Positions 34,701 through 38,491 of a stretch of 38,491 nucleotides of DNA are shown in pieces. Each line of letters begins with the position of its first letter. Positions within the stretch are counted from its first letter, which is position 1. The notes beneath the pieces were generated by a model that searched no databases, was not told where the DNA came from, and was given only the letters and a program-made list of their open reading frames with translations. Where the stretch lies: positions 19,654,001 through 19,692,491 of the forward strand of contig OZ116700.1 in NCBI GenBank assembly GCA_964199315.1, read 5' to 3'. The DNA is from Orbicella franksi. Taxonomy: Eukaryota. A program made the position numbers and the translations under genes.

Positions 34701-35418
34701 GAGAACCATAAAATTTGACTAAAATCTTGTGAGATCCAGAGTTTTTGAAGGACAATTCACCACCCCTAGCATTTCAATTCAATTCTTTACTTACACTATA
34801 AAGGGCATTTACATACATTTTATAAGGTAAAGTAATGAAAATAGTAAAAATTTAGAATATTAAGCCGTAATGAAATAAAATTCATATGTGAGTGCTGACC
34901 AAAGTGGCAAGTCAAGAGCTTTCTGGTAAATGGAAGCATAATAAATTAATTTAGCCAAGGGGAAAACTAGATCTGCATACACTACATTACAACATACATA
35001 CACTACATTCACACTTACATAGCAACAAAATCAAGCAGCAAAAGTTTGATTATTCAGAATCTAACTTGTTAGTTATCATGTGCAAGAGAATAGAGGGAGA
35101 AACAACAGCCTCTCTTTCTATATGTTAACTGCAATAATAACAATTACTTTACTATTACAACCTTTTTCAAACAGTAGTATCAAGTTGAAACAGATCAGCA
35201 CAGACTAACAATTAAATTCCATTCGATAAACGGCCTACCAATGATGGTAAAATTGGGTCCTTCTCTCCCTTTGCAAACCAATTTCCCCAACCATTTGCTG
35301 AGGAAGAATTAGAACTTTGACCATTTTGAATATTCCCGGAAGAAGACGAGCCGTTTTTCGATCTAGATCCAAAAGAAGCAAAATCCTTAAGAGCAGATAT
35401 TTTCCCTTCCAAATCCAT
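25758..35418 (-). CDS. SFT2D3: Vesicle transport protein SFT2 (SFT2D3/SFT2C-like), ~204 aa. Exons 35418-35239, 33337-33272, 29877-29792, 28156-28039, 27553-27495, 25863-25758
   Basis: Spliced translation ...PSLSQTQRIMGFFLFLLLGIFCFVMAGFIAPVMILKARKFVLLYTMGSLFTIGSFSLLWGPVNHVKHLCSLERLPFTAAYFGSMFATLY...QILALIWYFVSYIPGGTTGMKFF shows the Got1/Sft2 family motifs. Phases 0,0,2,0,2 are consistent; CDS 615 nt. Confidence 0.93.
26795..27020 (+). mobile_element. Highly degenerate Penelope-like RT C-terminal relic in an SFT2 intron
   Basis: With frameshifts: TFVTT..HPSVCDLRKTFINNWVTIQNQLLLNTIYTKHSTISYRCPK..DALVK, resembling the PFVTTYHP...LK..L...W..IQNQP.L..I...PP.ISY......D.LV.AK tail of PLE ORFs as I recall it. 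Confidence 0.55.
27738..27940 (-). mobile_element. Decayed tRNA-derived SINE
   Basis: Minus strand begins AGTGGCCTTAAGGGTTAG (A-box-like), then a degenerate B-box GGGCTCCAGCCC, followed by CTTGGGCAAGACAC and GCTGGGGGTAACCCTGTGAT...TCCCAACCAGGGGGG...ATACTCCTAGTCAC, a body typical of aquatic-invertebrate SINEs. Confidence 0.6.
29142..29652. mobile_element. MITE with GGTAATTGTGAAGAAGAGCTCCCTG-type TIRs and internal CTGTCGGT/GACAG repeats
   Basis: Left GGTAAT(aattat)TGTGAAGAACAGCTCCTG versus right CAGGGAGCTCTTCTTCACAATTACC, with multiple short subterminal repeats. Confidence 0.65.
30527..30939. mobile_element. Tc1/mariner (pogo/Tigger-like) MITE, decayed
   Basis: Termini CAGTGGAACCC / GGGTTCAACTG. 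The expected TA duplications are mutated (TG / TT). Confidence 0.6.
31102..33081 (+). mobile_element. Internally deleted hAT-like DNA transposon (1980 bp) with a 6-bp target duplication, in an SFT2 intron
   Basis: TIRs CAGAGTTCTCC / GGAGAACCCTG (10/11), flanked by CCTTTG on both sides (31096-31101, 33082-33087). A short ATG exon at 31445-31520 (MKRKTQQSLLSAWDKLKRNRDDTNE, GTAAG donor) resembles a transposase first exon. Confidence 0.7.
31860..32597. mobile_element. Long-TIR (~200 bp) non-autonomous element nested inside the hAT-like element
   Basis: 31860-32058 is the reverse complement of 32397-32597 at roughly 90% identity (TGAAGGCTTTCATGCA...CTTTTGGAG). Confidence 0.85.
33790..33860. mobile_element. 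Terminal fragment of a hAT-like element
   Basis: Ends TTGGCGACCGTATCGGTCACAATTTCGAGCCCTG (reverse complement CAGGGCTCGAAATT). No matching opposite end found. Confidence 0.45.
34033..34068. repeat. (TACATTG)n short tandem repeat
   Basis: TACATGTACATTGTACATTGTACATTGTACATTGTA. Confidence 0.85.
34523..34667. mobile_element. hAT-like MITE (145 bp) with a 5-bp target duplication
   Basis: TIRs CAGGGACAGATCT / GGATCTGCCCCTG (11/13), flanked by GAGAC on both sides (34518-34522, 34668-34672). Confidence 0.8.
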
Positions 35419-36007
35419 ATCTTTCGACTATCTTTTCAATACTTTACTGTCTACTTGTCTACGAAAATCGCGGGCTCAAAAGGAAACTCGGTACAACTCA
35501 CTTAACACCAGACTCCTCTCGTTGAATAAATCACAGTGAGTCATCTATAGCTATGAATAATTCTAGTTGGTCATTGCTATATATAACTTAACGAGGATTT
35601 TAAAATCTTTGATAATAAGTAGCCCCCATTTTTCTTTCAATAGATCATGTTCTATACCATTTTTCTACCTTCCAGAAAAAATGAAAACATTTAAAATTCT
35701 TTCTCCATGCATCATCAGATCGAAGTTTGCTCTTTTGAGCTCTTCATTTTAATGACTGTACGATGGTTTCAAATGCTTCTTTGAGAATTTGAGAATTGTT
35801 AACCCAACATACCCACTTGTGCAAAATATACTTGGATACTTGCCTCTCACGAATCACCTTCTGCGATAGGGACCTGAGAGAAATGTGAATGCTGAGATAA
35901 CCTGCGCCAAATTTATCAAAGCAAGGTATTTTTCTACGCGCTCTCGCTACCATCTGACAACGTATTACCCATGGACTAATCAACTAATTCCAAGGGCTGC
36001 AAGGGAC

Positions 36008-36135
36008 ACTTCCGTACCGGAAGTTATTTCCCGCCATTAAAAATCAACTCGATATATATCAACCTCATTTATATCCTCCACCTAACCTTACTTTAGTATA
36101 TGACGTCATTGGAAAGGCCAAGGGCAACATGGCGG
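36008..36135. promoter_or_regulatory. Candidate bidirectional promoter between SFT2 (-) and the UBL-UBL-SH2 gene (+)
   Basis: Inverted ETS-like pair ACTTCCG (36008-36014) and ACCGGAAGT (36016-36024), YY1-like CCGCCATT (36031-36038) and CAACATGGCGG (36125-36135), CRE TGACGTCA (36101-36108) with overlapping ATTGG. Located between divergent ATGs at 35418 and 36381. Confidence 0.5.
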
Positions 36136-36380
36136 ATGAAATGTTGAACGGTCTGCAGCCAGCTACCTTTTGACGGTATATTGTACACACAGAAGTGCGA
36201 GCTTAGATAGCTTCGTAACTGATTTTTTAGTTTTTCCTGCCTGACTTTTACCATCACGCAAATGAAATAAGGCCAACCTTGAGATCAGGACGTGAACAAG
36301 TTCAGCGAATGAATGAATGAATCAATGAACTTAACCTAATTGGGTTTATTAGGCGTCCCTAAGAGATTCTGCGATTCAAC

Positions 36381-37561
36381 ATGCAGATTTTCGTGAATCT
36401 GTTAAACGCAAAGAAGATTGTGGTGGAGGTGGAACCTTTGGATACCGTGGAAACCCTGAAGAATAAGATCTCAGAAGCAACGGGACTTCCACTACCTGCC
36501 CAATCTCTCAACGCGCAAAATGGCGCTAAGATCGAAAATGGCCGTCGCATTTATCTGGGAGATTTGATAAAGCCAAACACAATCATCAATTTGGCTCGCA
36601 AACGGGATGCATCGTTATCTTCGTTTTATGTCAATGCTGTGACAGAAGCGGGGAGAGTTTTAACTGTAATTCCTGAGGGAGGGAACTCTTCAAGTGTCCA
36701 GAATTTGAGAAGTAAATTATCGACAATGCTGGATCTACCAGCAGACAGCATGTTTCTGCGTCTGGTGGATTTGTCTCGTTTCGTGAATAAGGGTTTAGTG
36801 GTATTATTTAACAGTATGGAGGAGTGTGGTGTGGTCAGTGGTTCTGTTTTGTACGTGCAAATTCATCCATGGAAAGAAGAGTAAGTTTAAAATATAAAGA
36901 AAAATAAAGGCTAAAGTGTACGTGATCCGGTTAATGCAAATTAATCAGTGTGTGATTTTATTTATATTAGAAAAACAATATTTAGTTTCGTGATGTGGTC
37001 AAAAATATAAATTCTAAAAAAGGAAAAAAATTCTTAGCATTTCTAATTTATTATAGTAATACAAGAGTGACCATGAGTGGTCATTCCCCAATGTCCCCAA
37101 AATATGGTCCAGCGCCCGGGTGCAGCGAAATATTGACACTGTTAGACTTAACAAGTTTTATCTTTATTTTTATTTGCATTTTCATTTTAATTACCCGTTC
37201 TGTTTTATTAAATAAAATGAAATTTTAAATTTCATGACTGACATATACAAATCATGTACATGTATGGATCTCTATACTGCACCTACAGTTTTTAGGATGT
37301 AATAACCATCAAAATATCAAAATCTATACATGTATTTATGAAAAACACAGAATAACTTATGACTAAGTGTTTCAGCATTTGTTAACACATTTTTACTTAG
37401 TGATATTTCTTCGCTAAATGTACTCTTCTTCTTTTTTACAGTTGGTTCCATGGGAAAATAACTCGTGACCAGGCAGAACAAGTTATGTCTTCTGCTACTA
37501 ATGGACAGTTCCTGGTCAAAGAGAGCCTGACCTTTCCTGGTGATTATGTTCTCTTTGTTTG
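36381..37561 (+). CDS. 5' part of a gene encoding two ubiquitin-like domains fused to a Csk-type SH2 domain (exon 1 36381-36880; exon 2 37442-37561; continues beyond the LINE, probably outside the window)
   Basis: Exon 1 starts MQIFVNLLNAKKIVVEVEPLDTVETLKNKI (ubiquitin-like), and a second, more diverged UBL follows. Consensus donor GA|GTAAGT at 36880/36881 (phase 2), acceptor TTTTTTACAG|T at 37441/37442. Exon 2 reads (D)[39 protein letters not shown], close to Csk [36 protein letters not shown]. Confidence 0.8.
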
Positions 37562-37577
37562 GTAAGTTTGTCTTTTT

Positions 37578-38491
37578 TGCAAGTTGTTCGATTGGTTAAC
37601 GGCTAATAAATTAACCTTAAATATTAAAAAAACAAATTTTGTTATCTTTAGACCAGCTCAGAGAAAACTCACTTATCATCCCAAAATTATGATATTCGAT
37701 AATGATCAACAAAAGAATGTGGCTCTAGAATGTAAAGAATTTGTGAGATATCTAGGTGTAATAATTGACAATAATCTTTCTTGGAAACATCATATTGATC
37801 ATGTAGCTATTAAAATAAGCCGAACTGTAGGATTGATTTGTAAACTACGGCACTTTCTGCCAAGACAAACTCTTTTAACTATTTATAGATCCTTAGTTAC
37901 TCCTTATTTAACTTATGGTTTGGTGGCCTGGGGCCAAGCATATAAATCACACCTTGAAAAGCTTCTCAAGCTCCAAAAGCGAGCTCTTCGCTTTATTTAT
38001 TTTTCTGAGCGAAATCAACATACGATTCCTTTATTTATTGATGCCGGTGTTTTACCGTTAAAATTTTTGTATTATGAGCTTTTAGCTAACCTTATGTTTG
38101 AAATAAGACACAGAAATGCTCCTGGAAACATTCAAGATCACTTTCAAGACATTTCTGATATTCATTCTTACAATACTCGATGCTCTGTCTCAAATAATTT
38201 TTACACACAAAGTTCTAGACTCTCAATTCAAGTGAATTCATTTTCTAGAATCGGAACAAAAATTTGGAATGAAATGCCTATATATTTAAGAAAGCTTCCA
38301 AAAAAATGTCTTTAAGAGGAAAATAAAACAAACACTTTTTGAAATTCTAGCTTCAGAAGACTGTTATATTGATCTTACAGAAATCGTTCAAAAAGTAAAG
38401 TTGAATTTATTTTCCTCCTAGTATGTATTCATTAATACTCAATAATTTCGCTTTAGGGTATCTGTAGTCTGGTCGTAACTGTTGTTAATTA
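37578..38491 (+). mobile_element. 5'-truncated CR1/L2-group LINE (RT C-terminal region), intronic, sense orientation, running off the window end
   Basis: ORF 37584-38315 DWLTANKLTLNIKKTNFVIF..YLGVIIDNNLSWKHHI..LRHFLP..TLL.IY.SLV.PYL.YG..AWG..LQKRALR..HSYNTR..SF...G.KIWN is typical of CR1-group RT tails. One frameshift near 38310 continues FKRKIKQTLFEIL..ED.YID. Confidence 0.9.

Follow-up and report, generated by a model that had tools for sequence, protein, structure and literature searches.

A probable coral ROCO gene with repeated ubiquitin-like and SH2 domains ahead of Roc-COR and a death domain

Roco proteins have been sorted into three topologies, none of which has SH2 or ubiquitin-like domains, and the third group, that of DAPK1, carries Roc-COR followed by a C-terminal death domain and has no LRR (PMC6337361). 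Kaur et al. (2021, PMC8195603) regard the Roc-type AP-GTPase as a switch in systems of apoptosis and immunity and count SH2 among the adaptor domains to which invertebrate death-fold proteins are fused. Here we describe a locus on the forward (+) strand of a coral genome of 497 Mb, located in a stretch of 38,491 nucleotides (G000:C3:19654001-19692491; hereafter the window). We read the exons found there, with a probability of about 0.72, as the 5' end of a single coral gene that has 13 coding exons, spans ~17 kb from window position 36381 to ~53524, and encodes a ROCO ('AP-GTPase') protein of the DAPK1-like Roc-COR-death-domain kind with input modules made of ubiquitin-like (UBL) and SH2 domains. 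The product is most likely a coral signalling protein of ~1,300 residues with the order UBL1-UBL2-SH2a-UBL3-SH2b-linker-Roc-COR-death domain; on our best reading, the duplicated UBL-SH2 unit is its N-terminal input module and the kinase, ankyrin and LRR parts are absent. The Roc-COR-death-domain kind is known, but the UBL-SH2 input modules are new: in the literature searched we found no ROCO or death-domain protein that carries UBL/SH2 domains, nor any characterised protein with a di-UBL-SH2 layout, in line with what a first-pass annotation of the window, made from its letters, had supposed. To our knowledge, no human protein joins an SH2 domain to a death domain.

Exon 1 (E1, 36381-36880) encodes UBL1 and UBL2. 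Its open reading frame (ORF), 36381-36884, is 167 aa long and begins MQIFV; the exon ends at a phase-2 donor at 36880/36881 (GAAGA/GTAAGT, the slash marking the exon boundary), and the TAA of this donor is the stop codon of the ORF. AlphaFold, given an alignment of 16 sequences (the ORF and 15 homologs), produced a model (pLDDT 86.4, pTM 0.80) with two beta-grasp units, UBL1 (aa 1-73) and UBL2 (aa 84-161); the di-UBL, like its donor and the acceptor at 37441/37442, is found where the first-pass annotation had placed it. Pfam ubiquitin matched ORF residues 3-43 (E 6.8e-9), and UBL1 is 37-39% identical to ubiquitin; UBL2 had no Pfam match and was recognised by the model and by homology to the downstream UBL3, itself a Pfam ubiquitin match (E 1.9e-10). 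Among solved structures, linear di-ubiquitin and ISG15 fitted the model best (~163 columns, Foldseek E ~5e-13), and the ESM Atlas returned only generic di-UBL or ISG15 look-alikes. The di-UBL is single-copy in this genome. In an HMMER search with it, the best 150 matches were mostly polyubiquitins and included four useful stand-alone ORF homologs (100-175 aa); the di-UBL homologs are 53-89% identical ORF calls of ~167 aa, all from coral contigs, and the stop is at the same position in 14 of the 15. Di-Gly is absent: UBL1 ends LARKRDAS, the last residues of exon 1 are ...VQIHPWKE, followed in frame by the spliced SH2 exon, and a C-terminal GG occurs in none of the 16 aligned di-UBL sequences. 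Because the di-UBL continues into SH2 after 3-4 residues and has no Gly-Gly, it forms an integral domain pair and not a modifier. The three UBLs of the gene are non-conjugatable, integral domains, which agrees with the earlier reading of the first two.

RNA reads were placed on 36001-38491. The joint from 36880 to 37442 (GT..AG, skipping 561 nt), which had been proposed from the splice consensus, is carried by 12 raw poly-A reads with 10 start positions in run X24 and by one 886-nt contig from a second, independent study (X12); the acceptor at 37441/37442 reads ttttttacag. Seven X24 reads and the X12 contig extend past 37561, where they read TATTGAAGGTAAAACCAAGC..., the start of the third exon, which lies behind an acceptor at 42256. 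Since the read ends behind 37561 match this sequence, splicing connects exon 2 with an exon that lies 4.7 kb further downstream. The transcript start region and 5' UTR lie at 36100-36380, with RNA depth from the bin 36085-36168 in X24 and the X12 contig starting at 36150. The reads over 36001-38491 contained no joint to an upstream exon and no loose end pointing to one, and because coverage begins at ~36100-36150 without such a joint, the ATG at 36381 is likely the start. If transcription begins before 36130, the probable 5' UTR also holds a short upstream ORF of 14 codons at 36130-36174 (ATGGCGGATGAAATG...TGA). About 1 kb upstream of the gene, and facing away from it, a 68-aa ATG ORF that is rich in Ser, Asn and Gly lies on the minus strand (35212-35418) and has no Pfam match. 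At the homologous locus of another coral (L010), the upstream minus-strand neighbour matches Pfam Got1/Sft2, and ORF 35212-35418 may be the first exon of a divergent vesicle-transport gene that shares the promoter region.

Some transcripts retain intron 1 (36881-37441, 561 nt) and would encode a free 167-aa di-UBL. The sole X14 contig over exon 1, a poly-A contig at 36234-37110, runs 230 nt into the intron, and X14 contains no exon-2 contig; X12 likewise has an intron piece of low depth (37009-37310). If the stop codon inside the exon-1 donor and the presence of ISG15 among the fold and protein-language-model look-alikes are taken together with these contigs, the di-UBL might be viewed as a protein that, like ISG15, occurs mainly in free form and stems from transcripts with intron 1 retained or with premature polyadenylation. 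We consider this very improbable, because X24 has 12 spliced raw reads and zero depth over the intron, the spliced X12 contig is ~5x deeper than its intron piece (26.1 vs 4.9), and a protein without a C-terminal LRGG cannot be conjugated. Moreover, a stop within a phase-2 G/GTAAGT donor arises automatically and is no sign of a selected terminus.

Exon 2 (E2, 37442-37561; 120 nt, ending TG/GTAAGT) encodes the first half of SH2a, matching Pfam SH2 with E 2.3e-11 over model positions 1-39 of 77. SH2a continues in exon 3 (E3, 42256-42358) and ends in the short exon 4 (E4, 42900-42957 or 42900-43008), which carries its C-terminal motif (FYQNNTGCLPIELTEPV). Exons 2, 3, 6 and 7 all match the Pfam SH2 profile, with E values of 2e-11, 5e-4, 1e-7 and 9e-5, respectively. 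The SH2 domain had been called Csk-type, and among solved single-domain structures the CSK SH2 does match the 39-aa exon 2 best (43 bits, E 1.4e-10), but the SH2 domains of SHP2 and RasGAP score about equally and the invariant Arg of the FLVRES motif is a Lys, and the label fits only in a loose sense. The Lys of the SH2a motif FLVKES (codon 37518-37520) stands at betaB5, opposite the R of FLVRES in the alignment with the SHP2 C-SH2, and it is kept in all four species (this genome, L008, L009 and L010), SH2a lacking the canonical Arg in each of them. Arg-to-Lys at betaB5 is the classical binding-dead mutation of SH2 domains, and very few human SH2 domains lack this Arg.

The first-pass annotation had suspected a kinase or an adaptor, with the two UBLs sitting where SH3 would be; on the kinase reading, the UBL-UBL-SH2 part would run on into a Csk-like tyrosine kinase domain. 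Apart from the CSK SH2 match to exon 2, what we found speaks against it. No HRDxxxxN catalytic-loop motif and no GxGxxG glycine-loop motif occurs in any of the six frames of 30001-67000, the RNA joins exon 2 to the SH2 exon at 42256, and the next conserved exons encode UBL3, SH2b, Roc, COR and a death domain. Looking downstream, as had been advised, recovered the rest of the SH2 domain (exons 3-4) and no tyrosine kinase domain; the latter was rejected on the six-frame motif scan of 30001-67000 together with Pfam on the downstream ORF pieces, which gave only ubiquitin, SH2, Roc, COR-A and Death. At the other end, an SH3 domain N-terminal to SH2 was not found: the N-terminus consists of the two UBLs, the transcript starts ~250 nt before the ATG, and the reads point to no upstream exon. 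We regard a Csk-like kinase at this locus as scarcely credible.

The single ROCO gene that we favour extends beyond the window, and 30 kb of further sequence was added past the window end and translated in all six frames; positions above 38491 are extrapolated window coordinates (the G000:C3 position minus 19654000, with L002:5256 corresponding to window 42256). Thirteen exons, all GT-AG, chain into one stop-free ORF of 1314 aa (the alternative exon-4 donor would lengthen it to 1331 aa), and the remaining two frames of the 13-exon CDS contain 60 and 92 stops. Two of the 12 junctions (E1-E2 and E2-E3) are read-supported, and those from E3-E4 through E12-E13 are predicted. Protein-database searches, whose length limits leave out models of ~1300 aa, recovered no annotated full-length gene model and gave only prokaryote-style single-exon ORF calls on coral (meta)genome contigs. 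Intron 2 (37562-42255) runs past the window end at 38491. Within it lie two retrotransposon-like ORF fragments, at 37584-38315 on the plus strand (243 aa) and at L002:4118-4828 on the minus strand (237 aa), neither of which has a Pfam match; the fragment at 37584-38315 is not part of the product, and RNA depth over it carries many variant letters, which is what dispersed copies would give when transcribed. The same intron contains a tetranucleotide microsatellite (ATGT/CATA-type) of ~1.3 kb (L002:1480-2850), which yields MYVC / IHTY repeats whichever frame is read. Further on, the intron that separates the UBL3 exon from SH2b contains a hexanucleotide-type repeat (L002:8071-8349) with the translations (MT)n / (DN)n / (HC)n.

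Exon 5 (E5, 44073-44349) encodes UBL3, and SH2b is built from three exons (WYVGK...FLVRES), E6 (45559-45687), E7 (46465-46564) and E8 (47907-47979). In SH2b the betaB5 Arg is kept, within FLVRES here and FLIRDS in the orthologs, and the alphaA2 Arg is absent. When UBL2-SH2a is aligned with UBL3-SH2b, the match extends over ~158 residues (local BLOSUM62 score 275) and the intron positions agree, and in both units a GA/GTAAGT donor stands right behind HPW(K/N)E, UBL3 ending VQVHPWNE. Between the last UBL strand (HPWKE or HPWNE) and the first SH2 tryptophan there are just 3-4 residues. The alignment and the equivalent introns imply that the UBL-SH2 unit was duplicated in tandem.

The exon 4-exon 5 junction is without reads so far, and it is here that one gene might be divided into two neighbours, a UBL-UBL-SH2 adaptor (exons 1-4, ~260-280 aa) and a separate UBL-SH2-Roc-COR-death-domain gene that starts at ~44 kb. 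The intron between exons 4 and 5 is longer than 1 kb, and a terminal extension of exon 4 is compatible with the DNA search alone. The junction pattern is absent from JGI metagenome contigs, but so is the RNA-proven E1-E2 junction, this collection being devoid of such transcripts. We nevertheless find two genes unlikely. The UBL3 exon has no in-frame ATG ahead of the domain and begins mid-codon after a good acceptor; it needs an upstream phase-1 donor, and this is supplied by exon 4, whose two candidate donors, 42957 and 43008, are both phase 1 (the choice between them is ambiguous, the ortholog favouring the longer exon). The same phase compatibility is seen in two other corals, and reading through the exon-4 donors leads to a stop after ~25 more codons of unconserved sequence. 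Further downstream, the linker behind SH2b and the Roc P-loop share one uninterrupted exon (E9), and a 28-nt micro-exon bridges exon 11, which ends in phase 0, to the death-domain exon, which needs phase 1. These links, too, argue for one gene.

The Roc-COR part is encoded by exon 9 (E9, 48534-49058), which holds the linker, an internal phase-1 GT at 48605/48606 and the Roc P-loop, and by exon 10 (E10, 49768-51232; 1465 nt), which holds the rest of Roc and COR-A. Both the P-loop and the DxxG motif of Roc are present (GQDHAGKTS, WDFAGQ, GTHADK), and a Ser/Pro-rich insert of ~170 aa lies between them; Pfam Roc scored 23.5 bits on exon 9 and 29.9 bits on exon 10 against a cutoff of 27. COR-A, in the same exon as the C-terminal half of Roc, was matched with E 7.6e-17 (62 bits, cutoff 35.3), and COR-B had no Pfam match. 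Of the features that mark DAPK1, the Ca/calmodulin-regulated Ser/Thr kinase and the ankyrin repeats were not found, there being no kinase motif in 30001-67000 and no ankyrin Pfam match on the exon pieces. A Cys/His-rich exon (E11, 51867-52125) and the micro-exon (E12, 52781-52808) lead to exon 13 (E13, 53217-53524, stop included), which encodes a C-terminal death domain, as in ROCO proteins of the DAPK1 type, the linkage of COR to it resting on the conserved micro-exon and not on reads. The micro-exon has a conserved acceptor tract and, in the ortholog, a counterpart of 25 nt at the corresponding position. Against the PDB, the death domain matched that of RIPK1 (E 5.6e-5) and also those of TRADD and PIDD, these three being its nearest solved relatives; Pfam Death gave 19.4 bits here, under the cutoff of 22.6, and 29.2 and 30.4 bits in two orthologs.

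Three longer coral contigs carry the same gene order, L008 as far as its sequence reaches. In the ortholog assembled from L010 and L020, with splice sites chosen by similarity score, 13 exons form an ORF of 1320 aa that is ~66% identical to this gene end to end, with identical phases, seven exons of exactly equal length and the micro-exon present. A chain of nearest boundaries for the same ortholog also gave an open ORF, but it was rejected, its exon 4 and 5 boundaries being non-homologous. In a more distant coral (L009, 53% identical), 10 exons form an ORF of 606 aa with the order UBL-UBL-SH2-UBL-SH2-linker-death domain; the locus has no room for Roc-COR, and the linker donor G/GTAAAG joins the death-domain acceptor in frame. 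To judge from the genomic sequence, the short form is the sole form at L009. Behind the linker-exon donor of L009 (L009:17786-18733) stands GKACD, matching the GKTCD that leads into the Roc P-loop here. This match hints at a deletion of Roc-COR in the L009 lineage, the locus having lost Roc-COR or never had it.

A short form without Roc-COR could arise in this genome as well, from the internal donor of exon 9: the donor at 48605/48606 (CGTG/GTAAAA) shares phase 1 with the exon-13 acceptor, and joining them leaves a 579-aa ORF open. Given that the homologous donor and acceptor in L009, which lacks Roc-COR, give the open 606-aa ORF, and that UBL/SH2 and death domain can thus do without the GTPase module, one may ask if this UBL-UBL-SH2-UBL-SH2-death-domain adaptor is the main product, with Roc-COR left out by splicing or confined to a minor isoform. 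We hold this to be improbable. The Roc-COR exons are highly conserved, with orthologs 58-92% identical and the ORF open over 488 codons, and the micro-exon that restores the frame from COR to the death domain is conserved too. The Roc-COR exons are also present in RNA libraries: poly-A and cDNA libraries contain 0.74-0.79 of the words of 48534-51232, of which the exonic fraction is 0.74, and this share is consistent with spliced expression of Roc-COR. Finally, GTAAAA is a weaker donor than the terminal GTAAAT of exon 9, which stands in AG/GT context. We therefore retain the full-length, Roc-COR-containing protein as the more probable main product.

From the domain families, we infer the following roles for the parts of this protein. 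SH2b, with its FLVRES Arg, would dock the protein on a tyrosine-phosphorylated receptor or adaptor, and SH2a, with its Lys, and the three UBLs may form a packed scaffold or offer binding surfaces that do not depend on phosphotyrosine. Roc-COR would act as a GTP-controlled, dimerising switch, and the death domain may bring in further death-domain proteins to build a signalling complex for cell death or innate immunity. A role in immunity, as the first-pass annotation had guessed, or in cell death is thus plausible by way of the Roc-COR and death domains, and not by way of ISG15/FAT10-like conjugation. A bolder idea, which we offer tentatively and with more doubt than belief, is that UBL-SH2 is an unrecognised two-domain recognition unit that was duplicated together with its introns, one copy changing its Arg to Lys, and that both copies couple tyrosine-kinase signalling or a phosphotyrosine-independent ligand through the Roc-COR switch to death-domain assembly, which would give corals a pathway of their own, without a bilaterian counterpart, that leads from the phosphorylation of receptors to innate immunity or cell death. 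If our model of the gene is true, phosphotyrosine recognition, a GTPase switch and death-fold assembly are linked in one polypeptide. Corals with and without the GTPase module offer a natural comparison for what Roc-COR adds to the adaptor, and the conserved Arg-to-Lys change of SH2a, the natural counterpart of a standard loss-of-binding mutation, may reveal other uses of the SH2 fold. The expansion of cell-death and immune scaffolds that reef corals have undergone is poorly characterised, and the gene also provides a concrete, expressed case of it.

When set beside known systems, the protein resembles several of them in part. With ISG15, FAT10 and linear di-ubiquitin it shares two tandem beta-grasp domains of ~165 aa; unlike ISG15 and FAT10, its di-UBL has no C-terminal Gly-Gly and is not free-standing. 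The first half of SH2a aligns with the SH2 domains of Csk, SHP2 and RasGAP over 38 residues (E 1e-10 to 1e-12) and shares their WFHGK, PGDY and HY motifs, whereas the betaB5 Lys of SH2a sets it apart from them, as does the lack of an attached SH3, kinase or phosphatase domain. The NCOA6-clade TRADD-N proteins, lineage-specific death-fold adaptors of invertebrates (Kaur et al. 2021), likewise combine a death-superfamily domain with peptide-binding adaptor domains including SH2, but no TRADD-N was detected here, and the order and the partners (UBL, Roc-COR) differ. Within corals, the Roc-COR family is large (>600 matches), and in it the orthologs of the present gene stand apart, at 58-100% identity. 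Paralogs such as the 'putative serine/threonine-protein kinase pats1' of Acropora cervicornis (P0261), which likewise has a death domain, and the RING-Roc-COR protein of Oculina patagonica (P0289) are 39-47% identical in the Roc-COR-A core; the paralogs listed have death or RING domains and no ubiquitin or SH2 Pfam matches. In overall plan the coral protein is like the DAPK1 group, with which it has in common Roc, COR and a C-terminal death domain without LRR. In place of the kinase-ankyrin-Roc-COR-death-domain order of that group, it has an N-terminus of UBL-UBL-SH2-UBL-SH2 and a Roc domain that carries the ~170-aa insert.
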